From: Pseudomonas aeruginosa PAO1
GTDB taxonomy: Bacteria > Pseudomonadota > Gammaproteobacteria > Pseudomonadales > Pseudomonadaceae
Length of the DNA: 64,000 bases
Direction: 5' to 3' (one strand)
Assembly (NCBI RefSeq): GCF_000006765.1
Contig: NC_002516.2
Both the position numbers and the translations under genes were made by a program. Under the pieces are notes generated by a model. That model did no database searches. It saw nothing but the letters and a program-made list of their open reading frames with translations, and had not been told where the DNA came from. Below, in pieces: positions 16,657-33,933 of this stretch. Numbering within the stretch: the stretch's first letter is position 1; each line of letters begins with the position of its first letter.

Positions 16657-16798
16657 ATGCCCGGTCTTCTTCCTTCCGGTTTAGCCGGGGCCCGCGTTTC
16701 CTTGGCCGGCCCCTGAACCTCATCGCTGCATCGACGTCCCTAGCTACAGGCGAGCCTGTGGCCGGAGGCTTTCCATCATCCGCAAAAAGGTGAAAACC

Positions 16799-17566
16799 AT
16801 GCTGACCATCGACTACAACAGCTATCGCACCACTACCCCCTACGGCAAACGCGTGCGCTTCCTGGTGCTGCACTACACCGCGCTCGACTTCGCCGCCTCG
16901 GTCAAGGCGCTGACCACCGGCGCCGCCAGCGCCCACTACCTGATCCCGGCGCCGCACGACCCCAGCTACAAGGCCGCCGGCTTCAAGGGCCAGCGCATCT
17001 TCAACCTGGTCGCCGAGGAAGACCGCGCCTGGCACGCCGGCGTCAGCGGCTGGGCGCGCCGCGACAACCTCAACGACACCTCCATCGGCATCGAGATCGT
17101 CAACCTCGCCCGCGACGACGACGGCGTGTTCACCTTCCCCGACTACGAGCGCTCGCAGATCAACGCACTCAAGCAACTGGCGAAGAACATCCTGCAGCGC
17201 TACCCGGACATGACCCCGAAGAACGTGGTCGGCCACTCCGACATCGCCGTCGGGCGCAAGTCCGACCCGGGTCCGAAGCTGCCCTGGAAGGAACTCTACG
17301 AGGCCGGTATCGGCGCCTGGTATGACGACGCCACCCGCGATCGCTATCGCGAAGGCTTCGAGCGCGACGGCCTGCCGCCGCGCGCCGACCTGCTGGAGGC
17401 GTTCCGCCTGTACGGCTATGCGCTGCCGGCGACGGTCGACGACGCCTACTTCGCCAGCCTGCTGCGCGCCTTCCAGATGCATTTCCGCCCGGAGAACTAC
17501 GACGGCGCGCTGGATGTGGAGACGGCGGCGATCCTCTACGCTCTGAACGAGAAATACCCGGCCTGA
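16799..17566 (+). CDS. ampDh3: Zn-dependent N-acetylmuramoyl-L-alanine amidase AmpDh3 (PA0807)
   Basis: 255 aa from ATG after AGGTGA; FLVLHYT, SAHYLI, RAWHAGVS, SIGIEIVN and VGHSDIAVGRKSDPG motifs. Confidence 0.96.
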   Translation: MLTIDYNSYRTTTPYGKRVRFLVLHYTALDFAASVKALTTGAASAHYLIPAPHDPSYKAAGFKGQRIFNLVAEEDRAWHAGVSGWARRDNLNDTSIGIEIVNLARDDDGVFTFPDYERSQINALKQLAKNILQRYPDMTPKNVVGHSDIAVGRKSDPGPKLPWKELYEAGIGAWYDDATRDRYREGFERDGLPPRADLLEAFRLYGYALPATVDDAYFASLLRAFQMHFRPENYDGALDVETAAILYALNEKYPA

Positions 17567-18159: not shown

Positions 18160-19476
18160 TCAGCCGAACGCGAAGTCGGCCAGCAGTTGCAGGTTCAGGC
18201 CGACGATCGCCAGCGCTACCGCCCAGGCCAGCCACCGGGTCCCGGCACCGATCGCCAGCGGGCCCATCAGGCGCCGGTCGGAAACGAACTGTAGCAGCGG
18301 GATCACTGCCAGCGGCAACTGCATCGACAGGATCACCTGGCTGAAGATCAGCAGCCGCGCGGTGCCATCCTCGCCGTAGAGCAGGGTCACCAGCAGCACC
18401 GGCAGCACTGCGACGCCACGGGTCAGCAGGCGCCGCGCCCAGGGCGCCAGGCGCAGGCGGAGGAAGCCCTCCATGACGATCTGCCCGGCCAGGGTGGTGG
18501 TGACCGTCGAGTTGAGGCCGGACGCGAGCAGCGCCACGGCGAACAGCAGCGAGGCGAGTTCCAGGCCGAGCAATGGCGAGAGCAGCGCGTGGGCCTGCTC
18601 GATATCGACCACCTCGGTGTGCCCGTTGCGGTGGAACACGCTGGCGGCGACGATCAGGATCGCCGCGTTGACCAGCAGCGCCAGGGTCAGCGCCAGGCTG
18701 CTGTCGGCCACCGCCCAGCGCAGCGCCTTGCGCTTGCCGGCAAGGCTGCGCGGGTAGGCGCGGCTCTGCACCAGCGAGGAATGCAGGTAGAGGTTGTGCG
18801 GCATGACGGTCGCGCCGACGATGCCGATCGCCAGGTACAGGGCAGCCGGGTCGCTGAGCACCCGCGGGCTCGGCAAGAACCCTTGGAGCACCTCGCCGAG
18901 TTCGGGACGCGAGAGCAGCAACTGTACCGCGAAGCAGGCGAAGATCAGTGTCAGCAACGCCACCACGAAGGCCTCCAGCGGCCGCTGGCCACGTCCGATC
19001 AGGACCAGCACCAGCAGCGCGTCGCCCACGCAGAGCAAGGCGCCCCAGGCCAGCGGCAGGCCGAACAGCAGCTTCAGGGCGATGGCGGTGCCGATCACCT
19101 CGGCCAGGTCGCAGGCGATGATCGCCGTCTCGCAGGCCAGCCACAGCAGGCGGCAGGTGCTCGGCGAGTAGCGTTCGCGGCAGGCCTGGGCCAGGTCCAG
19201 GCCGCTGGCGATGCCCAGGCGCGCGGACAGCGCCTGCAGCAGCATCGCCATCAGGCTGGAGAGCAGGATTACCGAGAGCAGCAGGTAGCCCAGTTGCGCG
19301 CCGCCGGCGACGTCGGTGGCCCAGTTGCCCGGGTCCATGTAGCCCACCGCGACCAGGTAGCCGGGGCCGGCGAAGGCCAGCAGGCGGCGCCACCAGTGGC
19401 CGCCGCCGGGGACTTCGACCGGCTGGGCGCGACCGGGCTCGGCGGCCTGGGGGGCCGGGGTATCCTTCGCGGACAT
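18160..19476 (-). CDS. mntH1: Nramp-family Mn2+/Fe2+ transporter (PA0809)
   Basis: 438 aa; [26 protein letters not shown] and GQIVMEGFL signatures. Confidence 0.94.
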
Positions 19477-19582: not shown

Positions 19583-20284
19583 TCAGGCCGAGGCCGCCAG
19601 TTGCCGGTGCAGGTCCAGCAGGTCGCTGGCGATCAGGTCCCAGTCCTGCTCGGCGGCGAGGTCCTGGGACTGGCCGGGGCCGTATTCCAACGGCCGGGCG
19701 ATGAACGCGGTCTTCAGGCCGAGGGCGCGCGCGGCCTTGAGGTCGTAGTTGTGCGCCGCGCAGAGCATCACCTCCTGCGGCGGCAGGTCGAGCAGGCGGC
19801 AGGCGCCGAGGTAGACCTGCGGGTCGGGCTTGTAGTGGCCGAACAGGTCGGCGCACAGCAGCATGTCCCAGGGCAGCCCGGCGTGCCGCGCGACGTCGAG
19901 CATCAGCGCGGTGTTGCCGTTGCTCAGCGCGGCGAGCCAGTAGTCGGCCTTCAGCGCATGCATCCCGGCGAGCGTGTCCGGCCACGGCCGCAGGCGGTGC
20001 CAGAAGCCAGTGATACGTTGCAGCAGGGCCTCGTCCAGCGCCAGGCCGAACTCTCCGGCCAGGGCCTCGAGACTCTGCCGGTGCAACTGGTCGAGGTGCT
20101 GCCAGGGCGCCTGGCCGTTGCGTACCCGGTCCATCGCCGGCTTGTATTGCTGGCGCCAGCGGTCGGTCAGTTCCACGCAGGGCAGGGTCCCGCCGAGTTC
20201 GCGCTCCAACGCCTGGAACTGCTCGATCAGGCTGGAACGCCAGTCCACCAGGGTACCGAACACATCGAACAGGATCGCGCGCAT
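19583..20284 (-). CDS. HAD-superfamily hydrolase, type II haloacid dehalogenase-like (PA0810)
   Basis: 233 aa; [22 protein letters not shown] and CAAHNYDL motifs. Confidence 0.92.
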
Positions 20285-20314
20285 CGTGCCTCCTCGGCCG
20301 TGGCCGTCATCGCT

Positions 20315-21562
20315 TCAGTGCTTCTGTGGCAGCGCCGTGGGCAGGCCGCGGCCGCTCCAGGCAGTGACCACAAGGGCTACCGCCGCCATCAGGCAGAGTG
20401 CCAGCCAGCCGGGGACGAAGCTGTGGCTGAAGTCCTTGAGCAGCCCCAGCGCCGGCGGCGCGAGAACGATCGCCAGCTGGTTGATGGCCATCGCCAGGCC
20501 GAGGGCGAAGCCGGTCTTGCCGACCGGCGCGGTATCCGCCACATAGGCCACCCAGGGACCGTACCAGCCGAAGCCGAAGAAGCCCAGCCAGGCCACTACC
20601 AGGCCCATCCCCAACGGTGATTGCAGGGGCAGCAGGACCAGCGCCAGCAGGCCGAGGATCACCGCGCCGAGGCAGACCATCACCGGGAAGTAGCGCCCGG
20701 CGCGGCAGCGGTCGCTCCAGGCGGCCAGCAGGATGCGCCCGGCGACGCCGCTGCCCTGGGCGACGAACAGCAGGGTCGCGGCCATGCCGATGCCGATCTC
20801 CAGGGTCTCGTGCAGGTAGAGTACGGTGAACACCAGGATGCCGTACTGCACCGAGATCAGCGCCACCCCGGAACAGACGATGTTCTTCATCGCCGGGTCG
20901 GTGATCATCGCCAGCCGCGACTTCACCACCGCGCCCAGGTCGCGTTCGGCGGGGTTCGCGCCGGGCGCCGGGGCGTCCGGCGGGGTGCGGTAGAAGAGCA
21001 TGAAGGCCAGCGCGCCGAGGAACGCCACCAGGCCGCCGGCGAGGAACGCGCTGCGCCAGCCGTAGACTCCCGCCAGGTACGGCAGCAGCGCGGCGGACAG
21101 CGCGCCGCCCAGCGGCAGCCCGGCCTGGCGGATGCCCATGGCGAAGCCCAGCTGGGTCTTGGCGAACCAGCGCGACACCGACTTGCTGCCGCCCGGCTGC
21201 GCCGTGCTGTAGCCGGCGCCGACGACCACCAGGAACAGCAGGATGGTCAGGTAGTCGGTGGCCCACAGCGAGGCGCAGAGGGCCAGCGCGACGATCAGCG
21301 TGCCGAGGCCGACCACCAGCCGTTCGGAGTAGCGGTCGAGCAGCTCGCCGGCCACCAGCAGGCCGACGATCGGCACCAGCTGCGCCGCCGACACCAGCAG
21401 GCCGATCTGTAGCGACGAGAGTTGCAGGTCGTTCTGGACGAACACGGCGATCGCGCCGATGCCCTGGACGAAGAAGCAGGCGCAGGCCTGGGCGAAGGTG
21501 GCGATCAGCAGGATGACCCAGCGGTAGCGCTGGGTCGGGTTCGCGGCGAGGGCGGCGGTCAC
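20315..21562 (-). CDS. MFS transporter (PA0811)
   Basis: 415 aa, about 12 TM segments; GELLDRYSER motif A variant; GTG start overlaps the stop of the upstream gene. Confidence 0.92.
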   Translation of the reverse strand: MTAALAANPTQRYRWVILLIATFAQACACFFVQGIGAIAVFVQNDLQLSSLQIGLLVSAAQLVPIVGLLVAGELLDRYSERLVVGLGTLIVALALCASLWATDYLTILLFLVVVGAGYSTAQPGGSKSVSRWFAKTQLGFAMGIRQAGLPLGGALSAALLPYLAGVYGWRSAFLAGGLVAFLGALAFMLFYRTPPDAPAPGANPAERDLGAVVKSRLAMITDPAMKNIVCSGVALISVQYGILVFTVLYLHETLEIGIGMAATLLFVAQGSGVAGRILLAAWSDRCRAGRYFPVMVCLGAVILGLLALVLLPLQSPLGMGLVVAWLGFFGFGWYGPWVAYVADTAPVGKTGFALGLAMAINQLAIVLAPPALGLLKDFSHSFVPGWLALCLMAAVALVVTAWSGRGLPTALPQKH

Positions 21563-22854
21563 TGGACGAACTCCCGTGCGAGGGTGAAGTTGGCTTCGCC
21601 GAGCGGATGCAGGCGCTGCAGCGACAGGTATTCGCCGAGGGTGCGTTCCATGCCCATGCGCTGGAAGATCCGTTCGCCGTCGAGCTCGGCCTCGGCGCCG
21701 TTGGCGCGCAGTTCGTCGAGAGCCTGGCGCAGCAGCTGGCAGTTGTCGCTGAGCGTCACCCGGCCGTCATCGTCCACCGCGTAGGGCGTGTCCTCCATGC
21801 CGACCCGCAGCACGTCGACCTGGCTGTCCGCCTGCGCGGCATAGGCGGCCAGCCGGCGCACCGCGCAGAGCGGGGTGCCGGCACGAGGGCCGACGTCGAG
21901 CGGCCGGAAGTGCTGCGCGGCATGCTGCGGCATCACTGCCGCGCCGACCGTGATGCTGACCTTGCGCTTGCGCACGCAGGGTTCGCCGATGTCGTACTCC
22001 AGGCTCTTGGCGCTCTCGATCACCGCGCGGAACTGCTGGTAGGTTTCCGGGAACGGCAGGCGTGGCGAGAAGCCGAACAGCAGGATCACGTTCAACTGGC
22101 CGGAATCGCCCAGGCGCAGGCGCGGGTGCTCCACGGCGAAACGGGTCATGGCGTAGCTGCGCACATGCTGCACCCACTCCACCTCGTGGAACAGGCCGAG
22201 CTTCTGGCGCGCCTGGATGGCGTTGCGGTAGACCTGGAACTGGGTCATCGGCGAGGTCACCCCGTAGTCGGCGCCCTTGCTGGTGGAGTGGGTCTGCAAC
22301 TCGGCCTTTTCCAGCGCCGTGGACGGCTGGTAGTCGCGCAGGTCGGCGAGGAAAGCCGGGCTCGAGGCATAGTCGAGGTCGAGCTTGCGCCTTTGCTTCT
22401 CCAGCTCGCAGATCACCTGCAATTCGATGGCCGCCTGGATCGTCACGAAGTGCGCACCACCCAGGTGCAGCGGGATGGCGCAGTGGCTGACCCGCTCCCA
22501 CTCGCCGAAGCGGCGGATGTTCTCCTGCACCTCGCTGCCGTTGCGGCTGGCGCCGAAGCTCAGCATCAGGTCGGGGAAGCGGTTCTGCAGGGCGCGGCTG
22601 ACCGCCTGGTAGATGTCGTTGTCGGTGGTCTGTTCCTGGGTCAGCGGGTTGCGCGCGTGATAGTGGTAGTAGCGGCAACCCATCTCGTAGAGCTGGCGCG
22701 CTTCGTCCAGCAGTTCGCCGGGGGCGGTGCGGATGGTGGCGCCGGTGCAGATGCTGTCGAGTAGGCGGTCGCCGGTGGCGGCGTGGTTGCGCGGGGTGAA
22801 CTTGGCGCCGGTGGAGGCGCATCCGAGAATCAGGGTTTTCCGGGATCCGGTCAT
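21559..22854 (-). CDS. Beta-keto acid cleavage enzyme (BKACE/DUF849, KCE-like) (PA0812)
   Basis: 431 aa from ATG after GGAGG; ILGCASTGAK resembles the ITxAxTG family start, YYHYHAR gives the HxH metal site, and RVGMEDT resembles RVGLEDN. Confidence 0.8.
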   Translation of the reverse strand: MTGSRKTLILGCASTGAKFTPRNHAATGDRLLDSICTGATIRTAPGELLDEARQLYEMGCRYYHYHARNPLTQEQTTDNDIYQAVSRALQNRFPDLMLSFGASRNGSEVQENIRRFGEWERVSHCAIPLHLGGAHFVTIQAAIELQVICELEKQRRKLDLDYASSPAFLADLRDYQPSTALEKAELQTHSTSKGADYGVTSPMTQFQVYRNAIQARQKLGLFHEVEWVQHVRSYAMTRFAVEHPRLRLGDSGQLNVILLFGFSPRLPFPETYQQFRAVIESAKSLEYDIGEPCVRKRKVSITVGAAVMPQHAAQHFRPLDVGPRAGTPLCAVRRLAAYAAQADSQVDVLRVGMEDTPYAVDDDGRVTLSDNCQLLRQALDELRANGAEAELDGERIFQRMGMERTLGEYLSLQRLHPLGEANFTLAREFVQ

Positions 22855-23067
22855 GGTCGTCTTTCCTCCATTCATCATTCCATTGAGGGCGGAGCGGTCC
22901 GCGGCGGACCGAAAGGCTGCCCAGGGCGTCGAAAGTCGTCGGTGTCTCAGGCAGGTGAAAGATGTCGCTGGCGGGATCGTTATGCGTTGTTCTACGAGAG
23001 GGATTTAAACCGCATGGCGGCGGCCGTGCGCGGCGCATTCGGCAACGCTCGTTGCCGCCGGCACAAA

Positions 23068-23139
23068 GACCTTGCGCAAATCGCCCGGCGTTGCGCCAAC
23101 GCCGGCACGGCGGCGCAACGTTGCCATTCGCGCAAGGTC
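23068..23139. repeat. Nested inverted repeats forming a long stem-loop
   Basis: GACCTTGCGC (23068-77) / GCGCAAGGTC (23130-39); CGTTGCGCC (23089-97) / GGCGCAACG (23112-20); GCCG/CGGC innermost. Starts 3 nt after the PA0813 stop. Confidence 0.7.
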
Positions 23140-23141
23140 GC

Positions 23142-24389
23142 TCAACTGGCGGCGCGCTGTCGCAGACAATCCTCCAGGGCCTCGCCGAGGCGCTCGATCT
23201 CGCCGTCGTCGGTCAGGTAGTGCGGAGTCAGGCGCAGGACCCCCGGCAGCGCCTGCTCGCGCAGCGCCCAGCGGGCATACTGCGGGCCGATGTAGGAGGC
23301 GTTCACGCCGCGCGCGTGGAGGCGCTTCAGCCATTGCTCGCCGCTCAGTTCGGGGGCCGCGTAGGTCATCAACGCGCTGGCGTGCGGCCCTTGTTCCAGC
23401 GGCGTCCAGCCGAGCCGGCGGTAGAGCTGCTGGGCGATGCGTTCGCGCAACTGGCGGTTGCGTCGGGCGATGCGCCGGACATCGGTCTGCAACAGGTAGT
23501 CGCAACTGGCCTTGAGCGCCAGGCGCAGCCCCGGGTTGAACTCCGAGCATTCGAAGCGCCGCGCGTCATCCCGCGCCTGCAAGGCGAAGGCGTCGCTCCA
23601 TTGCGCGCCGCCGACGTCCAGCCCGTCGGGCAGGGCCAGGCGCTCCAGGGCACGTTCGCCGAGATAGAGCACGCCGAGTCCCTTTGGCCCGCGCAGCCAC
23701 TTGCGTGGCGGGAACACCAGCACGTCGCAGCCGGTCGCCTCCACCGCCAGCGGCAACTGGCCGACCGCATGGCTGGCATCGAGGAAGAACAGCCCGTCAT
23801 GGGCGCGGATGCGCTCGGCCACGCCCTCCAGCGCGGTAGCCGCGCCATGCCCGGTGGGCACCGCGCTGAGCGACAGCAGCGGCGTCTGGCCGGGGGCGAG
23901 GTCGTGCAACTGCTCGTCAAGCCGTTGCAACAGCTGTGCGGCGTCGCCGCGTGCGTCGATCAGGCGCAGCTCCAGCCCGCGCTGCTGGCGCGCGGCGAGC
24001 AGGCACAGGCTGTTGGAACCGTATTCGTCGAAGCTGCTGATCGCCCGTATCCGTGGATGGGCGGCCAGGGCCGCGGCAAAGGCCACCGACCATGCGCGGC
24101 TGGCGCAGTCGAGCAGGGCGATGTGCCGTGGCTGGGTGCCGAGCACTCGCGCGACGCTGTCGCGGACCGCCAGCAAGGGCTCGGCGAAATGCTCGGCGGC
24201 GCGCTGCACGCCCCAGCGCCGCTCGGCTTCCAGCCAGCTGTCGAGGGCCTCGTAGAGCACCTGCGGCGGCAGACTGGCGGAGCCGTGGGCGAAGTGCGCG
24301 TAGCTGCCCCAGGCCGGGGTCTCGCGGCGCAGGCGCAGCAGTTCGTCGGCACCGAAGGCGTCGGGGGCGGCGGGGAAGAGCGCGCTCAT
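23142..24389 (-). CDS. PLP-dependent aminotransferase class V / C-S lyase-like enzyme (PA0813)
   Basis: 415 aa from ATG overlapping the Rid stop (ATGA); FFLDASHAVGQ and PRKWLRGPKGLG (PLP lysine) motifs. Confidence 0.88.
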   Translation of the reverse strand: MSALFPAAPDAFGADELLRLRRETPAWGSYAHFAHGSASLPPQVLYEALDSWLEAERRWGVQRAAEHFAEPLLAVRDSVARVLGTQPRHIALLDCASRAWSVAFAAALAAHPRIRAISSFDEYGSNSLCLLAARQQRGLELRLIDARGDAAQLLQRLDEQLHDLAPGQTPLLSLSAVPTGHGAATALEGVAERIRAHDGLFFLDASHAVGQLPLAVEATGCDVLVFPPRKWLRGPKGLGVLYLGERALERLALPDGLDVGGAQWSDAFALQARDDARRFECSEFNPGLRLALKASCDYLLQTDVRRIARRNRQLRERIAQQLYRRLGWTPLEQGPHASALMTYAAPELSGEQWLKRLHARGVNASYIGPQYARWALREQALPGVLRLTPHYLTDDGEIERLGEALEDCLRQRAAS

Positions 24390-24820
24390 GGCCGCACCGC
24401 CGCGATCAGTTCCACCTCCACCGCGGCGCCGCGCGGCAGCTCGGCCACGCCGACGGCGGCGCGGGCGTGGCCGCCGCGCGCGCCGAGCACCTCGTCGAAA
24501 TACTCGCTGGCGGCATCGATCACCGCCGGCTGCTGGACGAAACCCGCCGCGCTGGCGACGTAGCCGGTCACCTTGAGCAGCCGCTCGACCCGTTGCAGGC
24601 CGCCCAGCGCCTCCTCCAGCGCCAGCAGGCAGCACGCCGCGCAGAGCCGGGCGGCCTGGCGGGCCTGTTCCAGGTCGAGTTCGCTGCCGACCTTGCCGGT
24701 CCAGCGCAGCTCGCCGTGCTGGCGCGGCAACTGGCCGCTGACGTAGGCGATGCCGGCGTGGAGCACCACCGGCTGGTAGGCGCCGCCGGCGACGATGGCC
24801 GGAGCGGGGGATGTCTGCAT
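24386..24820 (-). CDS. Rid (YjgF/YER057c/UK114) family imine deaminase-like protein (PA0814)
   Basis: 144 aa; AYVSGQLP, LKVTGYVAS, HARAAVGVAELPRGAAVEVE with the conserved Arg and Glu. Confidence 0.9.
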   Translation of the reverse strand: MQTSPAPAIVAGGAYQPVVLHAGIAYVSGQLPRQHGELRWTGKVGSELDLEQARQAARLCAACCLLALEEALGGLQRVERLLKVTGYVASAAGFVQQPAVIDAASEYFDEVLGARGGHARAAVGVAELPRGAAVEVELIAAVRP

Positions 24821-24943
24821 GGTCCTGTCCTCGTGGCGGACCCGCCCGGCCACGATGCTCGGGCGGGTCGATGGCTGGAAAAGCGCGACCTCACTACTGT
24901 GGGCCGGTTTTCCCGGTCTGTTTTGCGGGAGTCGACGAGCTGC

Positions 24944-24958
24944 TTGCCAAATCGGCAA
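24944..24958. promoter_or_regulatory. LysR recognition site (T-N11-A)
   Basis: TTGCC-AAATC-GGCAA dyad between divergent PA0814 and the LysR gene, about 80 nt before the LysR ATG. Confidence 0.6.
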
Positions 24959-25040
24959 AACAAACCGAACTTTAGCCTTGCAACAGGCACCGCCGCGCGA
25001 AGTAGACTGAAAACGCCCGACCGTTGAGGAACGCGCAACG

Positions 25041-25994
25041 ATGATCGACCTGGTGATGCTCAAGGACTTCCTCGTCCTCTGTCGGATCAAGAGCTTCAGC
25101 CGTGCGGCGCAGGAGTGCCATGTCTCCGTGTCCGGGTTGAGCCGGCGTATCCAGACCCTGGAACAGTGGCTCGGTGCACCGGTGTTCGAGCGCCACAAGC
25201 ACGCCCTCGAACTGACCGAGGCCGGCCGCCAGTTGCAAGGCGTGGCGCAGGACGCGGTGCGCGCCCTGGACAACCTGCGCCAGTCGATCCGCGAGCGCGA
25301 CGAAGACGCCCAGCGGCGCATCCGTTTCTGCGCCCCGCACATCCTCTCCTCGGTGTTTTTCCCGCACTGGATTCCGCGTCTGCAGGCGGACTTCCGCAGC
25401 GCCAAGTTCAGCGTCGACTGCGATTACCTGCCGCAATGCCTGTCGCGCCTGCGCGACGGCTCGGTGGACTACGTGGTGGCGTTGCTCGACGAAGGCGAGG
25501 CGGTGTCGCGCCGCCTGGGCATCGACAGCGAAGCCGAGTTCCAGCGCCTGGAGCTTGGTCACGAACAACTGGTGGCGGTCTGCGCGCCGGACGCCGCCGG
25601 CCAGCCGCTGTTCAACCTCGACCGCCTGCAGACCGAAGCGCTGTCGTTCCTCGGCTACTCCGAGGAATGCCACCTGGGCTGGGCCCTGGAACCGCTGCTG
25701 CGCGACAGCGGCCTGTTCCTCCAGCGCCATCACAGCTCCAGCCAGACCGAGGGGCTGCGCTTCTTCGCCCAGTCGCGTCTGGGCGTCGCCTGGCTGCCGC
25801 ATACCCTGGTCCGCGAGGACCTCGCCAGCCGTCGCCTGGTGCGCGCCGGCGGCCAGCGCTTCGACGTGCCGTTGCGCTACACCCTGATCCGTCGCCGCCT
25901 GCCGCTACCCGGCGAGGCCGAACGCCTGTGGACCTTCCTCGGCGAGCTGGCGCGCCCGGCGCCGCGCTATGCGGTGGTCGGCGCGGCCTCCTGA
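25041..25994 (+). CDS. LysR-family transcriptional regulator (PA0815)
   Basis: 317 aa; HTH SFSRAAQECHVSVSGLSRRIQTLEQWLG; divergent from the Rid gene. Confidence 0.93.
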   Translation: MIDLVMLKDFLVLCRIKSFSRAAQECHVSVSGLSRRIQTLEQWLGAPVFERHKHALELTEAGRQLQGVAQDAVRALDNLRQSIRERDEDAQRRIRFCAPHILSSVFFPHWIPRLQADFRSAKFSVDCDYLPQCLSRLRDGSVDYVVALLDEGEAVSRRLGIDSEAEFQRLELGHEQLVAVCAPDAAGQPLFNLDRLQTEALSFLGYSEECHLGWALEPLLRDSGLFLQRHHSSSQTEGLRFFAQSRLGVAWLPHTLVREDLASRRLVRAGGQRFDVPLRYTLIRRRLPLPGEAERLWTFLGELARPAPRYAVVGAAS

Positions 25995-26851
25995 GCCGCC
26001 GTCTCGGCCAGCAGGGCGCGGCGGAATTCACCGACCAGGTCGTCCTGCGCCGAACCGCTGCGGCTGACCATCACCAGCTCGCGCTGGAATTCCAGCGCGC
26101 CCAGTTCGATCACCCGTACCCGCGCCGGCTCGCGTAGCCACAGCCCGGCCCGGGGCAGCAGCGCCACGCCGAGGCCGTTCTCCACCATCCGCGCGATCGC
26201 GTCGATCTCGTCCAGCTCCATCACCTGGCGCGGCCTGAGCTGCTGCGCCTCGAGGAAATCGCCCACCAGGCGACCGCCGAAGGACACATGGTCGTAGCGG
26301 ATGAACGGTTGCGTGCGCAGCAATTCCAGCGCATCCGTCGCGGTGCATTGCGGCGGCGCGATCAGCACGAACGGCTGGCGCTCGACCCGTTGCGCGGAGA
26401 GCCCGCGCGGCAGGTTGAACGGCGGGCGGATGAGGATCGCCAGGTCCAGTTCGGCGGCGTCCACCTGGTCCAGCAGGTGCAGCGAGACGCCCGGCACCAC
26501 CTGCGGCTCGATGTGCGGCGCCTGTTCGGCGAGGCGCTTGAGCACCTCCGGCAGCAGCCCGGTCTGCGCCGTGTTCACTGCACCGATGCGCAGGCGTCCG
26601 CGCGGGCTGTCGCCCTGGCCGATGCCGTCGAACAGCGCGAGGATCTGCTCGGCCGTACGCACCGCCTGCCTCCCGGCCTTGTTCAGGTGTGCCGCGCGCG
26701 GCGTGCGCTTGAACAACTCGACGCCGACGCTGCGTTCCAGCGCGCGGATCTGCGCGCTCACCGCCGACTGCGTCAGCCCCACCTGTTCCCCCGCCGCGGC
26801 GAAGGAGCCCCGGCGCGCCACGGCGACCAGGGTGCGGAGTTCGCGGATCAT
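25967..26851 (-). CDS. LysR-family transcriptional regulator (PA0816)
   Basis: 294 aa from MIRELRTL; [24 protein letters not shown]; 3' end overlaps PA0815 by 28 nt. Confidence 0.93.
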
Positions 26852-27823: not shown

Positions 27824-28117
27824 GTGGCACCTTGTCCGGGCAAAACCGTCACCGCACAGTCCCCTTCCACCTTCATCCCCCTGCGACGCACCTCGCAATG
27901 CAACCAGCATCCCGGCTGCGCCACCCTCTACCTGGACTGCAGCGCAGCCAGCGAAGATCTGTTCGACACCGCCCGCACCCGTCTGGAGTCGGCGATCGGA
28001 ACGCTGAGCGTCCTCGACCTGCTCGACGAAACCGAAGAACCCGGTGAAAGCACCTGCCGCATCACCGGCTCCTTGCTGTCGCTGTTCGAGGCGGAATACG
28101 CACGCAGACACCGATAA
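27824..28117 (+). CDS. Hypothetical protein (PA0819)
   Basis: 97 aa GTG-start ORF. The C-terminal half (TLYLDCSAASEDLFDTARTRLESAIGTLSVL) looks like a real amphipathic helical protein; start uncertain. Confidence 0.55.
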   Translation: MAPCPGKTVTAQSPSTFIPLRRTSQCNQHPGCATLYLDCSAASEDLFDTARTRLESAIGTLSVLDLLDETEEPGESTCRITGSLLSLFEAEYARRHR

Positions 28118-28415
28118 CCGACGGAGGCGGTGCCCCCGGTGAGGCCGGGGGTTGGAGGAGTCTCTAATGTGAGCTGGTATGTCCATTGAGCCGAATTCAC
28201 ACAGGCCTTAACTATGAGCGTCTGTGCCGTACTATCCGCCTTGTCTGGCTAGGCTGTTGTGGTGAATTGGGCATGCCTTTTCGCTACATGCCTAACGATC
28301 TCAAGTAGGTATAGGTTTCTGGTAGAGGGGCATTGCTCCCGCTCTTTGCCAGGTTCGATTTTGGGCAGGTGCCTGATAGGCTGTCGCTCAACCATCATGA
28401 AAGGACTCTGCAGCT

Positions 28416-29228
28416 ATGCCCGCCGTTATCGCTGAGAATGATGTGTCGATCTGGGACGACGAAACTGGAGCTGTCTACCACTACCCAAGGCGATACAGCG
28501 CCATCCTTAAGCCAGGGGTGCAGGTGGTTTACTACAAGGGCAAGCTGACAGATAAGTCTTTTGCTGATCAGCGCCTCAGTGCTCAGCCGCATTACTTTGG
28601 TATTGCGCGTATCGGCAAGGTTTACCCTGACCCTGAAAGCTCGAAAGGTGATCTCTTCGCGTTGATCGAGAGTTTTCAGCCATTTGAGCAGGCAGTCCTG
28701 GCAAAAGAAGGGAATAGCTACCTAGAGCCCATTCCGCCATCGAAGGCCAGCAACTACTGGCGTAGTGGTGTCCGGGAGATTGGACAGGTCACCTTTGATA
28801 GCATCCTGGCAAGGGCCGAGATTAAGCCTTTGCAGGTTGCCGAGAGTTGGGGCGATAGAGCTTTGGGGGGCTTCGAGTCTCGCACCGAGGGCAGTCTGTC
28901 CACCTACTACGGGGTCCGCTACGAGCGTGACCCAACGCTGCGTCTCCAAGCAATTGCGATTCATGGTGTAGCTTGCAAGGCGTGCGGTTTTGATTTCGGA
29001 AAGGCATACGGCGAGTACGCGAAGGGTTTTATCCACGTTCACCACACGCAGCCCATTTCTGAGTTCGAAGCCCCCAAAGCCGTGAACCCTGAAACTGACC
29101 TGGTGCCCCTCTGTGCAAATTGCCATGCAGTTGTTCATCGCAGGCGTGATCGAACTCTTAGCGTCGATGAGCTGAAGGGGCTTGTTCGTGGGAGGTGGGT
29201 TTGCGCGGAGGCTGATGTAGTCGTTTAG
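28416..29228 (+). CDS. HNH endonuclease with distinct N-terminal domain, McrA-like (PA0820)
   Basis: 270 aa; C-terminal CKACGFDF...IHVHHTQPI...DLVPLCANCHAVVH (Zn finger plus HNH); AAAGGA RBS. Confidence 0.9.
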   Translation: MPAVIAENDVSIWDDETGAVYHYPRRYSAILKPGVQVVYYKGKLTDKSFADQRLSAQPHYFGIARIGKVYPDPESSKGDLFALIESFQPFEQAVLAKEGNSYLEPIPPSKASNYWRSGVREIGQVTFDSILARAEIKPLQVAESWGDRALGGFESRTEGSLSTYYGVRYERDPTLRLQAIAIHGVACKACGFDFGKAYGEYAKGFIHVHHTQPISEFEAPKAVNPETDLVPLCANCHAVVHRRRDRTLSVDELKGLVRGRWVCAEADVVV

Positions 29229-29230
29229 GT

Positions 29231-29272
29231 AAGGAAAAAGAAGGAAAAAGGGGACATATTTATTTTTCTGTC
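29231..29272 (+). repeat. Tandem AAGGAAAAAG x2 followed by GGGACATATTTATTTTTCTGTC
   Basis: 10-nt direct repeat at 29231-29250, then an AT-rich element bounded by GACA...TGTC, between convergent PA0820 and tsiV. Confidence 0.55.
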
Positions 29273-29334
29273 AGGCTCGCCTCATAGGGAGTTTAGCCTT
29301 GACGAGCACTTTTGATCCCAGAAAACGTAAGCCC

Positions 29335-30423
29335 CTACAGGCGCTCCGGCAGCGTATTCGTCGCGTCCAGGTAAGGCTCAGCGCTGAGCAGTTTGTCGCA
29401 CCACCGGGGAATCTCGCTGTCTTCCACATCCAGCCGTTTCAGCCATTGATCGGCCGCCCAGCCCACCAGCCGCAATTCGCCGTCGTGGGAGCCGCCGTGT
29501 AGCGAGCCGATGGTTTCATAGCGAATGCCTTTGAGCGCGTGGTTCAGCAGCACATACGGAGCGGGCCTGGAGTCTTCCGCATCACCCGCGATATAGGGAT
29601 AGGCACCGGCCTGGATTACCACGCCATCGCCGTAGCGGTAGAAGGCAAAGTGGCTGGAGGGCAGTTGCGCACGCAGGGCATCGAGCCCGCCGGCCAGCGC
29701 CAGGCGCTCGTTGTTCAGGAGGGTTAGCCAACTGACAGTTTTGATTCTTGTAGGTTTGAACTCGGGAGTATTGGCCAGCAGACAAGCCGTCCCTACATCC
29801 AAACCCGGCATACGCGCCGCCATAAAGGCTTCGGAGGGCTCGTCATTGTCCCAACTGGTCGGCGAGAGATTGTAGGCATGCCCCGCATACCCCTGCTCCG
29901 GCTCTAGTCGCCGTGCGAAGTCAATAAACAGCTGTAGGAAATCCAATGGCTGCCGCTCTTGATATAGCAGAGGTACGGAGAACTCCAGAACACTAAGATC
30001 ATGCCCCATTTTGGCTTGCCAGCTCCGCTTGCCGTAAATATCAAACAGCCAGGCGCCTGCATCGCGGGATTTCTTGCCGCTGGTGTAGCAGAAGCTGAGA
30101 TGATCGTCTTCATCCATTGCCCCCATCATCTCGCGCAGTGGTTGGGTGTCACGGTATGCGGTCAGTGGCTTTCCTTGTGCAGGCTCTTCACGCCAGAGCC
30201 AGGTGAGGTGAGGCTCTGCCAGGCGCTCGAACTCATCGAAGCATTGGCATAATGACTCACGTACCAGTGGGGTATGGGCCTTTTTGAAGTAGAGAGTGCC
30301 GCGTAGGCAAAGCACAGCACCGATATAGTCTTCGGGGCCGCTCTTCATCAACAGGTTGCCGGCTATTTCCAGTAGATGGGGTTGCTTGGCTAACTCTGCA
30401 GCCAGATCGAATGGCTGTTCCAT
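29335..30423 (-). CDS. tsiV: DUF3396-family T6SS immunity protein TsiV (PA0821)
   Basis: 362 aa; GYAGHAYNL, MPGLDVG, IKTVSWLTLL and GVVIQAGAYP motifs; immediately downstream of the VRR-NUC effector, with AGAGGA RBS. Confidence 0.88.
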   Translation of the reverse strand: MEQPFDLAAELAKQPHLLEIAGNLLMKSGPEDYIGAVLCLRGTLYFKKAHTPLVRESLCQCFDEFERLAEPHLTWLWREEPAQGKPLTAYRDTQPLREMMGAMDEDDHLSFCYTSGKKSRDAGAWLFDIYGKRSWQAKMGHDLSVLEFSVPLLYQERQPLDFLQLFIDFARRLEPEQGYAGHAYNLSPTSWDNDEPSEAFMAARMPGLDVGTACLLANTPEFKPTRIKTVSWLTLLNNERLALAGGLDALRAQLPSSHFAFYRYGDGVVIQAGAYPYIAGDAEDSRPAPYVLLNHALKGIRYETIGSLHGGSHDGELRLVGWAADQWLKRLDVEDSEIPRWCDKLLSAEPYLDATNTLPERL

Positions 30424-30439
30424 GGGCTTTTCCTCTTGA

Positions 30440-30886
30440 TCAATAGGCGGGAATCATCGGGCGAGGGGAACGGCCTCGGGTCAAGACGAACATCACTCCA
30501 CCTGCGATGGCGACGGCCCACCCTGCTTGCTCTACTGGCACCTTGGATCGTTGATTTTCCTGGCCACAGTCGCAGTCGGAGGGTTTCATTTCAACAATCT
30601 TGTTCTTGTTGCCGGCAATCGCTGCATAATCCTCAAGTTGTTCCCTATTATGTGGGTCAGGCGGAAACTTCATCTCCACCACCTGCTTGATATTGTCCTG
30701 GGTTGGCGGCCTGTTGGGATTCTGAACGATGATCACGTCGGGCCTGCGAATCATTCCTTTCCCTGGCTTGAACGGCGGATGCTCCGGATCTTCATCCCAA
30801 TACTTGCTGATCCATCCCGGTATCCAGCCATGTGGACTGTTACCGGTCTGGCTATCGAGAATCGGCTGCGGTGGGTTCTTGGTCAT
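30440..30886 (-). CDS. tseV: VRR-NUC nuclease domain ORF, C-terminal half of TseV (PA0822)
   Basis: 148 aa; PD-(D/E)xK motif RRPDVIIV...VVEMKFP; GAGGT lies 10 nt upstream of its ATG. Confidence 0.8.
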   Translation of the reverse strand: MTKNPPQPILDSQTGNSPHGWIPGWISKYWDEDPEHPPFKPGKGMIRRPDVIIVQNPNRPPTQDNIKQVVEMKFPPDPHNREQLEDYAAIAGNKNKIVEMKPSDCDCGQENQRSKVPVEQAGWAVAIAGGVMFVLTRGRSPRPMIPAY

Positions 30887-30907
30887 GTCGTAGCTGACCT
30901 CGGGCTT

Positions 30908-31141
30908 TTAGGGGCTGCGTCCCTGGAGAACTTCGTCCAACTCTCCCAGCCGCTGTGCCACGCACGCCTGCTTGAGGCTTTTGCCATCCTGGCTGAGGTT
31001 GGGCGTGCTGCTGCAATGGCAGACCGCCGAGCACAGCACCTTCTTGTCCTGCGGATCGAGCCTGGGTTCCAGGGTGCCGACGGGGTTGGTCCTGCCTTCG
31101 GGGCTCATGCCTCCCCGGGACAGGCTGGGCTGGTCGCTCAT
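30908..31141 (-). CDS. N-terminal Cys-rich fragment of the effector (PA0823)
   Basis: 77 aa from an ATG overlapping the PAAR stop (ATGA); LCSAVCHC...KQACV. Confidence 0.65.
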   Translation of the reverse strand: MSDQPSLSRGGMSPEGRTNPVGTLEPRLDPQDKKVLCSAVCHCSSTPNLSQDGKSLKQACVAQRLGELDEVLQGRSP

Positions 31142-31656
31142 GCGTCGCACCTCTGCACCAGGTCGATGTAGAGGATCTCCGCGGTGGGGCGCTCGATCCA
31201 GGAGGTCATGCCGTCGGCATCCGTGGTGTCGAACGCATTCCAGCCGCCACTCGACCAGACCCTGACCCGGCGTCCGGCGACGGGCTTGCCCGTTTCGTGG
31301 TCGATGAGCTGGAAGCGCCCGGAACAGGGCACGCTGTTGCGGTTAAGGGGAAGGGCGGGAGCGCGCGGGGCGGGCGTGAAGACGTCGCCGATGAGTACCG
31401 TCCCCGAGCCGCCGATCACCACGTTGCCGTGCGCCCCGATACTACCCAGCGTCACCGCCGGCAGGCCGTTGATGAGTACCGTCGACGAAACGGCTGAGAT
31501 CATCGGGCTTCCGCAGGCTGAGGCGTCGCCTTGCCGTGCTGCCGGCAGGCCGTCGAAAACGACGTCGGGAGAGCCCTGGACGATGGGGTTGCTGCCATGC
31601 CCTGGCACTGGGCAGGTCGTTGGATCGGTGACGCGGGCGGCGGGTTTTCCACTCAT
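31138..31656 (-). CDS. PAAR-domain T6SS spike-tip protein with C-terminal extension, PAAR2 (PA0824)
   Basis: 172 aa; KPAARVTD...CPVPGHG, LPAARQGD...CG and PAVTLGS...HG motifs, plus about 75 aa beta-rich C-terminal domain. Confidence 0.93.
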   Translation of the reverse strand: MSGKPAARVTDPTTCPVPGHGSNPIVQGSPDVVFDGLPAARQGDASACGSPMISAVSSTVLINGLPAVTLGSIGAHGNVVIGGSGTVLIGDVFTPAPRAPALPLNRNSVPCSGRFQLIDHETGKPVAGRRVRVWSSGGWNAFDTTDADGMTSWIERPTAEILYIDLVQRCDA

Positions 31657-31829
31657 GTGCGGGTCCTTGCATCAGTGAGATGTGCTGGCCGCTCTGGCGG
31701 CCAATTCGGGATTGAACGAGTCGGCACCTATCGCCAGCGGAAGAAACGCAGAAGGGGACTTCTCCTTGTCCCACCTCCCGGCATTGGTTTCTTCTCCGGC
31801 CCGCCGAGGACCGTAGCGAGGTGCGCCGG

Positions 31830-32165
31830 TCAGTCTTGAGGGTGCGACGCGGAAGCGCCGGCTACCTGCAGCGCTGCAACTTCCAGCCGGGCGTCGCGGC
31901 GGGTCTGCTCCGTATGGCCCTGGATGATGCCGGGAATCAGGAAGGCATCGACGATCCACCAGATGCCGGTAATGATCAGGGGGAACAGGGTGAAACAACC
32001 GATCAGCGTGATGATCAGTTGGGTAACCGCCGTGCCGGTTTTCCCCAGGTAGAAGCGGTGTGCGCCGAAACCGCCCAGGAAGAACCACAGAAGATAGGCG
32101 GTGCCGGTGGATTTCTGGGCGTTGGAAACTTTCTGCTCCACGAGCATTTCAGACTGTAGTGACAT
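31830..32165 (-). CDS. TM2 (NINE) domain membrane protein (PA0825)
   Basis: 111 aa; KSTGTAYLLWFFLGGFGAHRFYLGK is the TM2 signature. Confidence 0.88.
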   Translation of the reverse strand: MSLQSEMLVEQKVSNAQKSTGTAYLLWFFLGGFGAHRFYLGKTGTAVTQLIITLIGCFTLFPLIITGIWWIVDAFLIPGIIQGHTEQTRRDARLEVAALQVAGASASHPQD

Positions 32166-32293
32166 GAGTTTTCCCACTGATCCATGCGGAAGACATGGTG
32201 GGAATTGAAACGTTGCCAACGGTGTTTTTTCAAGCGTCCAGTCTGAGGATGTTTTTGATTTGTAGTTTTATTGCGGGGCTCTGGAAGAGTCGG

Positions 32294-32313
32294 CCAGGAG
32301 TCGGAACTCCTGG
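32294..32313. repeat. Perfect 8-bp hairpin upstream of the TM2 gene
   Basis: CCAGGAGT-cgga-ACTCCTGG. Confidence 0.5.
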
Positions 32314-32362
32314 ACTTCGTAGAAGTGCTTAAAACAAACTGGCGAGTGGCTGGAGTTTATTG

Positions 32363-32396
32363 GCGAAAGGCGTCCGGCCGGGCGCCTTTCGCTTTT
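32363..32396. terminator. Hairpin terminator, GCGAAAGGCG-type palindrome
   Basis: GCGAAAGGCGtCC-ggcc-GGgCGCCTTTCGC followed by TTTT on +; the same arm sequence recurs at 45635-45662. Confidence 0.7.
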
Positions 32397-32407
32397 GTCC
32401 GTTAACT

Positions 32408-33046
32408 TCATAGTGGCGTGGTTTCGAACTTTATCTTTTGATAGTTCTCGAAAATGAACCTGTCTTCCGGCGACAGGGCCGTTTCGTCGAAGGGCAGGAT
32501 CGCGCCGTCATGCATGACCTTGTAGTCGCGAGAGGTGATTTTCGTCTCCGCCGTGGTGAATGTACTCATGAAGCGCTTATGGGCATCCTCCTGGAACTCC
32601 TTCCTGTGCTGGAGGAAGTAGGCGAAGTCCATGTGCCCAACCATGAAGACGATGCTCCAGTCCTTCCTGGCGGCTATGTCCCATTTCCACATGGCGGAGA
32701 GTTTCCGCCTAATGGCCTGGTCGGACTCCCTCAGGGCCTTCTTGAGACAGTCGAAGGCGTAGGTACTGTCTATGTCGAATTCGCAGATGGTCAGGTAGTT
32801 CACGAACTTTTCGCCGAAGACACAACTGGAGCCGAGGGTGAAAACCTCGTATCCCGGGTAATACCTGCGAAAGAAATCAAGTTCCGTCAGGAACCAGTCT
32901 TCCAGTGCGGGTCGGCTGCTCTTCCCGTAGACGTTCTTGACGATGTCTGGCGTATATTCGAACCCTTCGCTGGTGCAGGTCAGAACGTTCTTCTCATCTT
33001 TGGCGATGACTATCCTGTTTTTTGCTCCTTTCGGTTCCTTTTTCAT
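32408..33046 (-). CDS. Orphan hypothetical protein (PA0826)
   Basis: 212 aa from ATG after AAGGA (ORF could extend to GTG at 33115); low-GC; no family recognised. Confidence 0.75.
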   Translation of the reverse strand: MKKEPKGAKNRIVIAKDEKNVLTCTSEGFEYTPDIVKNVYGKSSRPALEDWFLTELDFFRRYYPGYEVFTLGSSCVFGEKFVNYLTICEFDIDSTYAFDCLKKALRESDQAIRRKLSAMWKWDIAARKDWSIVFMVGHMDFAYFLQHRKEFQEDAHKRFMSTFTTAETKITSRDYKVMHDGAILPFDETALSPEDRFIFENYQKIKFETTPL

Positions 33047-33471
33047 TTTTCTTGTCCTTCGAGCGTCTGTGGAGGCCGGTTTATCGTGTTTTGGAATCTC
33101 TGTTTTAGGTTTCACTTTCCAAGGATATAAGACGCCTGCTTACCCTGGTAGTGAGTGTCTAGCTCAAATTCTTTTTCTGTGCTTGACGAAAAGTATGCGT
33201 CGGTTTCTCGGAGGCTCGTTTTCTTGGGCGGGGAGTTTCGAACCTGAATCCATGAATGTTTTCCTGCCAGCGTTCCAGAACCTTGTTGGCGGCGGAATCG
33301 AACGGTCTCATTAACAGATTCGGGAAATATCATTCCACGCGTCCGCAGCCAAAAGGGCGGGCCGGCGAAGCTCGCCGGGTGCCGGTCACGGTAGGGGAGG
33401 GAGCAGCAAGGCGAGCCGGCAACAGGAAAGGCCCGGCGCTGGAGGAGCAGGCAAGGAACTGGGCAAAGAAA

Positions 33472-33506
33472 AAGCCCCTGAAATTCACTAGGAAAATCAG
33501 GGGCTT
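33472..33506 (-). terminator. ssrA terminator
   Basis: AAGCCCCTGA...TCAGGGGCTT stem 14 nt after the tmRNA CCA, followed by TTTCTTT on the minus strand. Confidence 0.85.
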
Positions 33507-33519
33507 ATCTCTTTGCATT

Positions 33520-33872: not shown

Positions 33873-33895
33873 AAAACCTTGACAGGTCGACGACC

Positions 33896-33925: not shown

Positions 33926-33933
33926 TCCGCCGC

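Follow-up and report, generated by a model that had tools for sequence, protein, structure and literature searches.

The PA0810–PA0815 locus of Pseudomonas aeruginosa: a Rid–PLP gene pair and a BKACE-like–MFS unit beside a divergent LysR gene

We analyzed a stretch of 64,000 nucleotides from Pseudomonas aeruginosa PAO1 (contig NC_002516.2), which we refer to as the window. Part of it corresponds to PA0807–PA0816, and we focused on the cluster PA0810–PA0815. Five genes of this cluster are co-oriented on the minus strand, and a lysR gene is divergent from them on the plus strand, across a 220-bp spacer (Table 1). An original prediction, made from the DNA sequence alone, described the five genes as a complete route for an amino-acid-like compound. 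We found that the locus is a composite of two separately conserved modules, and not one ancestral five-gene operon. Module A (PA0814–PA0813) encodes a Rid protein and an enzyme that depends on pyridoxal 5'-phosphate (PLP), and module B (PA0812–PA0811–PA0810) encodes a BKACE-like enzyme, an MFS transporter, and a HAD hydrolase. The predicted families (Rid, class-V PLP enzyme, BKACE superfamily, MFS, HAD, and LysR) are all correct, and so is the statement that the pathway was uncharacterized: our literature search did not turn up a paper that assigns a pathway to PA0810–PA0815.

Two separately conserved modules at one locus

Of the four junctions between the five genes, only two are 4-nt overlaps (ATGA between the Rid and PLP genes, at 24389-24386, and GTGA between the BKACE-like and MFS genes, at 21562-21559). 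These overlaps were part of the original prediction, as were the shared orientation and the divergent lysR, but the other two junctions are gapped. Between the MFS and HAD genes there are 30 nt, which include a GAGGAGG ribosome-binding site, and the PLP stop is 287 nt from the start of PA0812. (The longest open reading frame for PA0812 extends to 22878, which would shorten the gap to 264 nt. We took the ATG at 22854, which is preceded by GGAGG; NCBI places the start there too, as does P. citronellolis.) Because of the 287-nt gap and the small number of overlapping junctions, the cluster is not one tight block.

We compared the neighborhoods of BKACE-like genes at 45 genome loci. A Rid gene and a close homolog of the PLP gene were beside the BKACE-like gene at just one of these, in P. 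paraeruginosa, and this is the same locus as in the window. The original prediction had proposed that co-conservation be checked in this way; with Rid–PLP missing from 44 of the 45 loci, it is not co-conserved with the BKACE-like gene. A PA0811-type MFS gene adjoins the BKACE-like gene at 13 of the 45 loci, with 50-69% identity in other genera. The loci with this pair include Streptomyces, Kitasatospora, Nocardioides, a metagenome-assembled genome of the Xanthobacteraceae, and the cyanobacterium Tolypothrix. A LysR–BKACE–MFS core is found in Pseudomonas, Halomonas, and Franzmannia (loci L054-L056 agree with this), and at four loci it is followed by a PA0810-type HAD gene.

P. citronellolis, the closest relative, has lysR and BKACE–MFS alone, at another chromosomal site, and its BKACE-like protein is 89% identical to PA0812. 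P. kilonensis also has a LysR–BKACE–MFS unit of this simpler form. By blastn, the P. citronellolis locus (L055) aligns to the window on both sides of module A: 5682-6715 of L055 matches 25976-24943 of the window (80%), and 6991-8355 matches 22864-21500 (82%). There was no significant homology to P. citronellolis between 24943 and 22864 of the window. Hence 2,078 bp of P. aeruginosa replace 275 bp of P. citronellolis, and the break at 24943 is right beside a candidate LysR box (box 1, discussed below). A complete, co-conserved route of five genes is not supported, in view of the comparison across loci, the bare core in P. citronellolis, and the 287-nt gap, which contains a second candidate box.

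Table 1. Features of the cluster and its immediate surroundings, in window coordinates
Feature	Position	Strand	Remarks
LysR-type regulator PA0815	25041..25994	+	Pfam HTH_1 + LysR_substrate
Candidate LysR box 1, TTGCCAAATCGGCAA	24944..24958		TTGC-N7-GCAA; inner T-N11-A at 24945-24957
Rid1-subfamily imine/enamine deaminase PA0814	24386..24820	-	Pfam Ribonuc_L-PSP
Class-V fold PLP enzyme PA0813	23142..24389	-	Pfam Aminotran_5, 103.8 bits
Candidate LysR box 2, TTGCGCGAATGGCAA	23121..23135	-	TTGC-N7-GCAA
287-nt PLP–BKACE spacer	22855..23141	-	GC-rich inverted repeats
P. aeruginosa-specific segment: rid promoter region, rid, PLP gene, most of gap	22865..24942		Homology break vs P. citronellolis
Long BKACE-superfamily enzyme PA0812, 431 aa	21559..22854	-	Pfam BKACE, 36.9 bits
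MFS transporter PA0811	20315..21562	-	Pfam MFS_1, 182.9 bits
L-2-haloacid-dehalogenase-type HAD hydrolase PA0810	19583..20284	-	TIGR01428, 222 bits
Nramp transporter MntH1 (PA0809)	18160..19476	-	Pfam Nramp, 421 bits

Rid–PLP loci elsewhere were found by scanning metagenomes with an alignment of the PLP family. A Rid gene whose product is 68-73% identical lies directly upstream of the PLP gene at three of these loci (L066, L072, and L073), as does a 50%-identical Rid gene at a fourth (L089). At L073, where all of the genes could be read, the order is a LysR gene, then a DHDPS-family gene, an amino-acid transporter (SBP_bac_3, two permeases, and an ABC ATPase), Rid, and PLP. At Variovorax-type loci, a LysR gene (60-64% identity to PA0815) is divergent from DHDPS–PLP–TctC–MR_MLE–aminotransferase. 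The remaining PLP homologs are in varied and unrelated gene contexts. We also observed Rid–PLP fusion gene calls of 455-557 aa (89-100% identity) in Logan, NCBI, and other assemblies (P0121-P0126 and P0131-P0135). Frameshifts at the ATGA overlap might explain such variants, or they might be artifacts of assembly or gene calling.

The BKACE-like gene has other partners in other lineages. In mycobacteria it is paired with a different MFS gene and an aminotransferase. In Bradyrhizobium, the genes that come after a PA0815-type LysR gene encode a three-subunit dehydrogenase, the BKACE-like enzyme, an AEC transporter, and an oxidoreductase. The other flank of this LysR gene has genes for an ABC transporter of amino acids and for a class-V PLP enzyme that is 31% identical to PA0813. 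When we named the partner genes at the module A loci and at the Bradyrhizobium locus with NCBIfam, no equivalog-level assignment pointed to a substrate.

The gene is found in two settings in Streptomyces. The first is ATP-grasp–BKACE–MFS–ferredoxin–Nramp, and the second is a co-directional row of 13 genes, as on the S. canus plasmid NZ_CP109336 (L093, 10885-26886) and also at L008-L019, L029, L036, and L050. This row runs from the BKACE-like gene through HAD, discoidin, cupin, class-III aminotransferase, ATP-grasp, Ldh-family, VOC, methyltransferase, class-I/II aminotransferase, lhgO, and Nramp genes to an MFS gene, with a LuxR regulator adjoining. Its HAD protein is without the second Asp of the phosphatase motif, as is PA0810. 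The row looks like an undescribed biosynthetic or salvage cluster, and we did not find a known biosynthetic cluster with this arrangement in the literature. Between Pseudomonas and Streptomyces or Kitasatospora (L003-L005 and L046), the BKACE-like proteins (about 70% identity) and the MFS proteins (about 66%) are unusually alike, which suggests that the pair may move horizontally as a unit.

We also identified an AmpDh3-type amidase and an AHSA1 protein, besides MntH1, upstream of the cluster in window coordinates. A second LysR gene, PA0816 (25967-26851, minus strand), converges on PA0815, and the 3' ends of the two genes overlap by 28 bp. The window's GC content is high (about 0.68) outside of 28000-34000, where it is 0.54-0.61. 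An HNH-motif-like open reading frame lies at 28416-29228, and this part of the window may be an island or a mobile insertion.

The regulator PA0815 and a candidate operator

A published primer for cloning PA0815 matches the start region of lysR in the window. PA0815 has both domains of the family (HTH_1 and LysR_substrate), its gene is divergent from the presumed targets, and the spacer between them has a T-N11-A dyad. These are the features of a LysR-type unit, in which PA0815 would bind DNA. This dyad had been noticed in the original prediction and is present between lysR and rid, within a conserved TTGC-N7-GCAA. We dropped the bare T-N11-A as a test for operators, as it has 2202 matches in the window, and used TTGC-N7-GCAA instead.

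Box 1 is 83 bp upstream of the ATG of lysR and 124 bp upstream of the ATG of rid. Box 2 lies 6 nt downstream of the stop codon of the PLP gene, and about 267 nt separate it from the ATG of PA0812. The window has three copies of TTGC-N7-GCAA, versus 1.3 expected, and two of the three are within the 507 bp of the cluster's two spacers (Poisson P about 5e-5, by our own estimate). The third copy (26309-26323) sits inside the coding region of PA0816. P. citronellolis has a counterpart box (TTGCGCGTCCGGCAA) 100 nt upstream of its BKACE-like gene. The box is also 82-92 bp upstream of the lysR start at Variovorax-type loci and at L089, and it is found beside lysR or before the BKACE-like gene in Pseudomonas, Halomonas, and most other related loci. 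It is missing from three of the four Bradyrhizobium loci that we checked. Across all of the loci we compared, there were only 61 boxes in 1.38 Mb. Because the box is conserved near lysR at similar spacing across loci, and because it is rare overall, we consider it a credible operator of the PA0815 family, to which PA0815 would bind. LysR control of the cluster, as originally predicted, is supported by this conserved box.

We do not claim that box 2 is a retained ancestral operator, because its flanking homology to the P. citronellolis promoter region is no better than for shuffled sequences. The region upstream of rid gave the same result against the P. citronellolis spacer. A 13-nt inverted repeat (CGGTCTGTTTTGC / GCAAAACAAACCG, 28 nt apart) flanks box 1 on both sides (window 24914-24967).

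The 287-nt spacer is possibly an internal promoter or a processing region. When folded, it is not more stable than shuffled sequence (z -0.94), and Rfam gave no match of note to a riboswitch or other known RNA in this gap or elsewhere in 16-28 kb. The gap does not contain a credible small open reading frame (there is only an unconvincing one of 47 aa that starts with TTG). Scans for intrinsic terminators and sigma-70 promoters, which are weak at this GC content, found none in the spacers.

PA0815 is 79% identical to the LysR that adjoins BKACE–MFS in P. citronellolis, and it is 60-64% identical to the LysRs beside DHDPS–PLP operons. In a maximum-likelihood tree of 25 LysR sequences, one clade (support 91/96) holds regulators from PLP-type operons interleaved with those from BKACE-type operons. 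PA0815 and its P. citronellolis counterpart are placed beside Halomonas (BKACE-type) and Variovorax-type (PLP-type) groups. The shared clade and the shared operator suggest that these regulators may respond to related effectors.

Two published observations bear on transcription. AlpA antitermination after DNA damage gives a plus-strand transcript from PA0807 (ampDh3, 16790-17566) to PA0829 (PMC7969949). On this strand, the transcript would run in sense through PA0815, but mntH1 and PA0810–PA0814 would be crossed in antisense. Also, PA0807, PA0809, PA0811, and PA0812 were grouped with the alp genes in one transcriptome (PMC7044273); the AlpA transcript may explain why PA0809, PA0811, and PA0812 move with the alp genes.

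The enzymes and the transporters

All 144 residues of PA0814 (1-144) align with PDB 9BK9, "Rid family protein PA0814" (E 1.8e-88), and the protein has the YjgF/L-PSP fold (57 bits in Pfam). Its subfamily and its activity were reported previously: it is a Rid1 protein that deaminates 2-aminoacrylate and several imines in vitro, with ridA complementation (PMC5619798). Clustering of Rid1 genes with class-V PLP genes of the "cysteine desulfurase" type had been noted earlier as well (PMC4433059).

PA0813 covers positions 5-371 of the 371-position class-V profile (PF00266). In an alignment of 17 family members, the Schiff-base lysine (K230) and the PLP-binding aspartate (D204) are invariant, and there is no invariant or near-invariant cysteine after K230. 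PA0813 is thus not a typical cysteine desulfurase, and the original prediction was right that it lacks the catalytic cysteine loop. Similarly, the SufS, IscS, and CsdA models give 36-60 bits against cutoffs of 475-661. The best match in NCBIfam is EgtE, at 74.7 bits versus a cutoff of 400, so PA0813 does not qualify as an EgtE-type C–S lyase either. All of its nearest named relatives (EgtE, C-DES, PvdN, and SufS/CsdA) are far under the family cutoffs. We believe that PA0813 is probably an eliminating lyase.

PA0812 is 99% identical to a protein cluster with 1,625 members that their sources name as Pseudomonas aeruginosa. The Pfam BKACE model (PF05853/DUF849) matches only residues 52-128 of PA0812, with a score (36.9 bits) above the gathering score, and this covers 75 of the profile's 274 positions (24-98). 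Kce-type equivalogs in NCBIfam score 18.8 and 15.3 bits, versus cutoffs of 430 and 350, and searching PDB with the sequence gave marginal matches. An AlphaFold2 model built from 24 homologs (predicted local distance difference test or pLDDT, 84; predicted TM-score or pTM, 0.88) has the TIM-barrel fold of Kce. Its top Foldseek matches are 3LOT, 2Y7D, 9HNF, and 8RIP (E 4e-11 to 2e-9; TM(target) 0.71-0.83), and Foldseek also finds CESH[D] and ObcA. PA0812 keeps the putative metal triad of BKACEs, which consists of the H-x-H after strand 2 and the Glu of the G-L/M-E-D motif: H64, H66, E354, and the adjacent D355 are invariant in 24 sequences. A profile search of PDB aligned only these two motifs, with HIHARD and RVGLED of 3LOT, 3E02, and 9ZSC. 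The modeled fold and the metal motifs support the placement of PA0812 in the BKACE superfamily.

Within the superfamily, PA0812 is remote: it is 11-17% identical to characterized BKACE members, and the proteins of its family exceed canonical BKACEs by about 130 residues. This long subfamily is rare, with 38 representatives at E<=1e-30 among 1.84 billion, yet its members are 55-72% identical between Pseudomonas, Streptomyces, Mycobacterium, and Bradyrhizobium. A billion-scale profile search from PA0812 yielded divergent intermediates only, and no canonical BKACE that could be aligned residue by residue. (A conserved tyrosine is counted among the catalytic residues of BKACEs; PMC12871164.) According to the literature, the DUF849 fold hosts several chemistries and some DUF849 members are not BKACEs. 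For instance, BsfD from flavophos synthesis is a DUF849 member with a central zinc site at its TIM barrel. We therefore refine the BKACE label: PA0812 belongs to a divergent long subfamily whose chemistry is putative. That it acts by C–C cleavage is a guess.

The best NCBIfam matches of PA0811 are to the D-galactonate (ACS), phosphoglycerate, and aromatic-acid symporter families, and efflux families score under 20 bits. By sequence, PA0811 resembles importers of organic anions, which would favor uptake and catabolism over export. The original prediction had left the choice between uptake-and-catabolism and synthesis-and-export; the first is favored by this importer-like transporter and the second is disfavored.

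PA0810 (233 aa) is 100% identical to PDB 3UMC, which was deposited as "L-2-haloacid dehalogenase PA0810", and it scores 222 bits against the model for type II haloacid dehalogenases of the HAD superfamily (TIGR01428, cutoff 125.4). Its motif I has a single aspartate (FD7VFGTLVD) and is without the DxD phosphatase motif. The next named relatives of PA0810 in PDB include cis-epoxysuccinate hydrolases (CESH[L]), with which the Asp–His–Glu positions align. The sequence lets us narrow "HAD hydrolase" to the L-2-haloacid-dehalogenase type, with a solved structure.

MntH1 is possibly associated with the cluster. The mntH1 gene is 106 nt downstream of PA0810 on the same strand, and Nramp genes are linked to the BKACE-like gene in several arrangements in Streptomyces and Kitasatospora. 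P. paraeruginosa has no mntH between its HAD and AHSA1 genes. In the literature on mntH1, we did not find a link to the cluster through co-regulation under manganese starvation.

A proposed role for the locus and how it compares to known systems

We propose, with slightly more belief than doubt, that PA0810–PA0814 form a regulon of PA0815 in which the two modules serve to import and degrade a compound that is amino-acid-like or a 2-substituted carboxylate. In module B, PA0811 would import the carboxylate as an organic-anion-type symporter. PA0812 would then transform it in a metal-dependent reaction, most likely C–C cleavage or a related reaction at a metal-polarized carbonyl. PA0810 would hydrolyze the C2 substituent of a related carboxylate, as an accessory step that only some lineages have. 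In module A, PA0813 would carry out an elimination on an amino-acid-like substrate, and the enamine or imine that it releases would be hydrolyzed by the translationally coupled PA0814, which would give ammonia and a 2-oxo acid. The 2.08-kb segment with module A came between lysR and PA0812 in the lineage of P. aeruginosa. Each unit has its own TTGC-N7-GCAA box and would have its own promoter.

The main argument that the modules are functionally connected, rather than chance neighbors, is that the LysR clade and the operator are common to both. If a Rid–PLP pair with its own regulation had simply landed beside an unrelated LysR–BKACE–MFS unit, then the mosaic history of the locus and the varied contexts of PLP homologs would be as expected. 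But the LysRs that govern module A elsewhere belong to this clade too, and their loci have this box at matching spacing. Bradyrhizobium has the two modules together as a second, independent case, and in P. aeruginosa the Rid–PLP pair is placed exactly between the box and the BKACE-like gene. We would be very surprised if the arrangement were accidental. Together, the shared LysR clade and the Bradyrhizobium locus give the link between Rid/PLP and BKACE some independent support.

At the other extreme, the five genes might be one co-transcribed operon for a single linear route: uptake by the MFS transporter, conversion to a keto acid by the PLP enzyme and Rid, cleavage with acetyl-CoA by the BKACE-like enzyme, and a final step by the HAD protein. 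We think that this is unlikely, even though the genes are co-oriented with two translational overlaps, a terminator-like site was not found in the gap, there is one divergent lysR gene with a conserved box, and the LysR gene of Bradyrhizobium is flanked by a class-V PLP gene and a BKACE-like gene. The single genome locus (of 45) that joins Rid–PLP to a BKACE-like gene, the LysR–BKACE–MFS core that stands alone in P. citronellolis, and the gap with its second LysR box all speak against it. Also, the HAD gene is optional across lineages, and the hand-over falls one step short: PLP and Rid yield 2-oxo acids, but canonical BKACEs need 3-oxo acids.

Less likely again, in our judgement, is a pathway for synthesis and export, in which the BKACE-like enzyme would build an unusual carboxylate or amino acid (such as a metal-binding compound or an antimetabolite), the MFS protein would export it, and the nearby Nramp transporter would import metal. 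BsfD, as a relative of BKACEs, shows that a biosynthetic role is possible. The cluster of 13 genes in Streptomyces and Kitasatospora, which is headed by the BKACE-like enzyme and is LuxR-regulated, has an ATP-grasp ligase, two aminotransferases, a methyltransferase, Nramp, and MFS; the arrangement with ATP-grasp and ferredoxin also includes Nramp; and mntH1 is directly downstream of the cluster in the window. On the other hand, PA0811 scores with importers and not with efflux families, the window has no ligase or tailoring genes, mntH is missing from the corresponding site in P. paraeruginosa, and the loci of Pseudomonas and Halomonas are minimal (a LysR gene and a divergent operon), which is typical of catabolism. 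We favor catabolism or detoxification because PA0811 is importer-like and because of this minimal layout in Proteobacteria. We keep a biosynthetic or metal-related role as a rival because of the actinomycete clusters and the repeated linkage to Nramp.

If the locus is for detoxification or use, its substrates could be 2-halo or epoxy carboxylates. We regard these as a specific and weakly supported guess, which we make because PA0810 is in the dehalogenase/CESH[L] group and because CESH[D] shares the fold of PA0812. In its full form, in which PA0811–PA0810 would work like the haloacid permease–dehalogenase operon of Burkholderia and PA0812 would act as a CESH[D]-like hydrolase instead of a CoA-dependent cleavage enzyme, this idea is a long shot. 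PA0810 does pass the type II dehalogenase equivalog model and was deposited under that name, it shares the Asp–His–Glu arrangement with CESH[L] epoxide hydrolases among its next named relatives, CESH[D] is among the structural matches of PA0812, and a permease and a dehalogenase do form an operon in B. caribensis MBA4 (PMC3931356 and PMC2777183). But most loci with the BKACE-like–MFS pair have no HAD gene, true BKACEs fit the structure of PA0812 better than CESH[D] does (TMq 0.53-0.54 vs 0.45-0.47), and dehalogenase activity in vitro may be promiscuous.

Several observations weigh against our proposal of a PA0815 regulon for uptake and breakdown. In the published PA0815 study by chromatin immunoprecipitation sequencing, the motif is a degenerate GC-rich string and the targets are ribosomal genes, and PA0812 and PA0814 are not among the targets in the accessible part of its supplementary lists. 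Box 2 has neither flanking homology to the P. citronellolis promoter region nor a usual position, being unusually distant from the start of PA0812. A terminator-like site was not found in the 287-nt gap, and one transcript could run across it. The BKACE-like clusters of Streptomyces look biosynthetic, given their ATP-grasp, methyltransferase, and LuxR genes. As for PA0812, its identity to characterized BKACEs is very low, and C–C cleavage is only a guess because its same-fold relatives CESH[D], ObcA, and BsfD perform other chemistry. Finally, modules A and B may act on unrelated compounds.

There is also a bolder extension of the PA0815 regulon, to which we give a modest chance. The long-form family of PA0812 would be a new enzyme class in the DUF849 fold, with chemistry unlike that of BKACEs and with manganese or iron from the linked Nramp transporter. 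With the HAD and Rid/PLP proteins, it would form a route not seen before for a carboxylate or amino acid that is natural, reactive, and 2-substituted (epoxy, aziridine/azetidine, halo, or thio). One LysR clade would sense this compound across Proteobacteria, and actinomycetes would reuse the enzyme to build such a molecule.

Although PAO1 is among the best-studied bacteria, PA0810–PA0815 have been left without a pathway, despite two structures (3UMC and 9BK9) and in vitro activities of two of the proteins. A LysR-controlled locus for a small molecule is of an ordinary kind; what is new here is mainly a subfamily of long BKACE-like enzymes and a LysR clade that swaps modules. The subfamily of the central enzyme is rare, tightly conserved, and apparently horizontally mobile, and its genes are accompanied by that of an anion transporter and, in many cases, by an Nramp gene. 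Two modules under one LysR clade, and a sharp conserved operator, provide handles for finding the inducer and the substrate. This would place the Rid1 subfamily, which is without a known in vivo substrate, in a physiological context. Unless the BKACE-like enzyme has new chemistry, the value of these results is incremental and not field-changing.

Parts of the locus resemble known systems. The coupling of a Rid gene to a PLP gene recalls RidA and the enamine-releasing PLP enzymes (threonine dehydratase and cysteine desulfhydrase), in that the Rid gene is translationally coupled to the PLP gene. It differs in that PA0814 is in the Rid1 subfamily, and in that its partner is from an uncharacterized class-V clade whose nearest relatives are EgtE, C-DES, and SufS (E 1e-9 to 1e-12). 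Like the deh4a–deh4p operon of Burkholderia caribensis MBA4, module B has an MFS permease for carboxylates (as predicted for PA0811) beside an L-2-haloacid dehalogenase, and Deh4a (PDB 2NO4) matches PA0810 with E 3e-16. Here, though, the MFS–HAD pair comes after a BKACE-like gene, and it is the BKACE-like enzyme, not the dehalogenase, that is the constant partner of the MFS transporter.

PA0812 shares with BKACE/Kce (2Y7D/2Y7F, and PdKce, 8RIP) the TIM barrel, with a TM(target) from Foldseek of about 0.8, as well as an N-terminal TG strand and the H-x-H and G-(L/M)-E-D metal-ligand motifs. At 431 aa, it is longer than they are (about 275-310 aa), and its dependence on acetyl-CoA is putative. 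CESH[D] (5ZMY) and ObcA (4NNC) are structural matches of PA0812 as well, but with TMq 0.45-0.50 they fit less closely than true BKACEs do. The Foldseek matches listed did not include BsfD, and for none of the three did we find a match to PA0812 at the sequence level. Taken together, these three proteins indicate that the scaffold can perform hydrolysis and C–C bond formation besides cleavage. Lastly, the locus is like classical LysR divergent units in having a divergent lysR gene with a T-N11-A dyad about 83 bp upstream that is conserved at orthologous loci. It differs from them in that a second copy of the box lies within the gene row, and in that one clade of regulators serves two enzyme modules in different bacteria.

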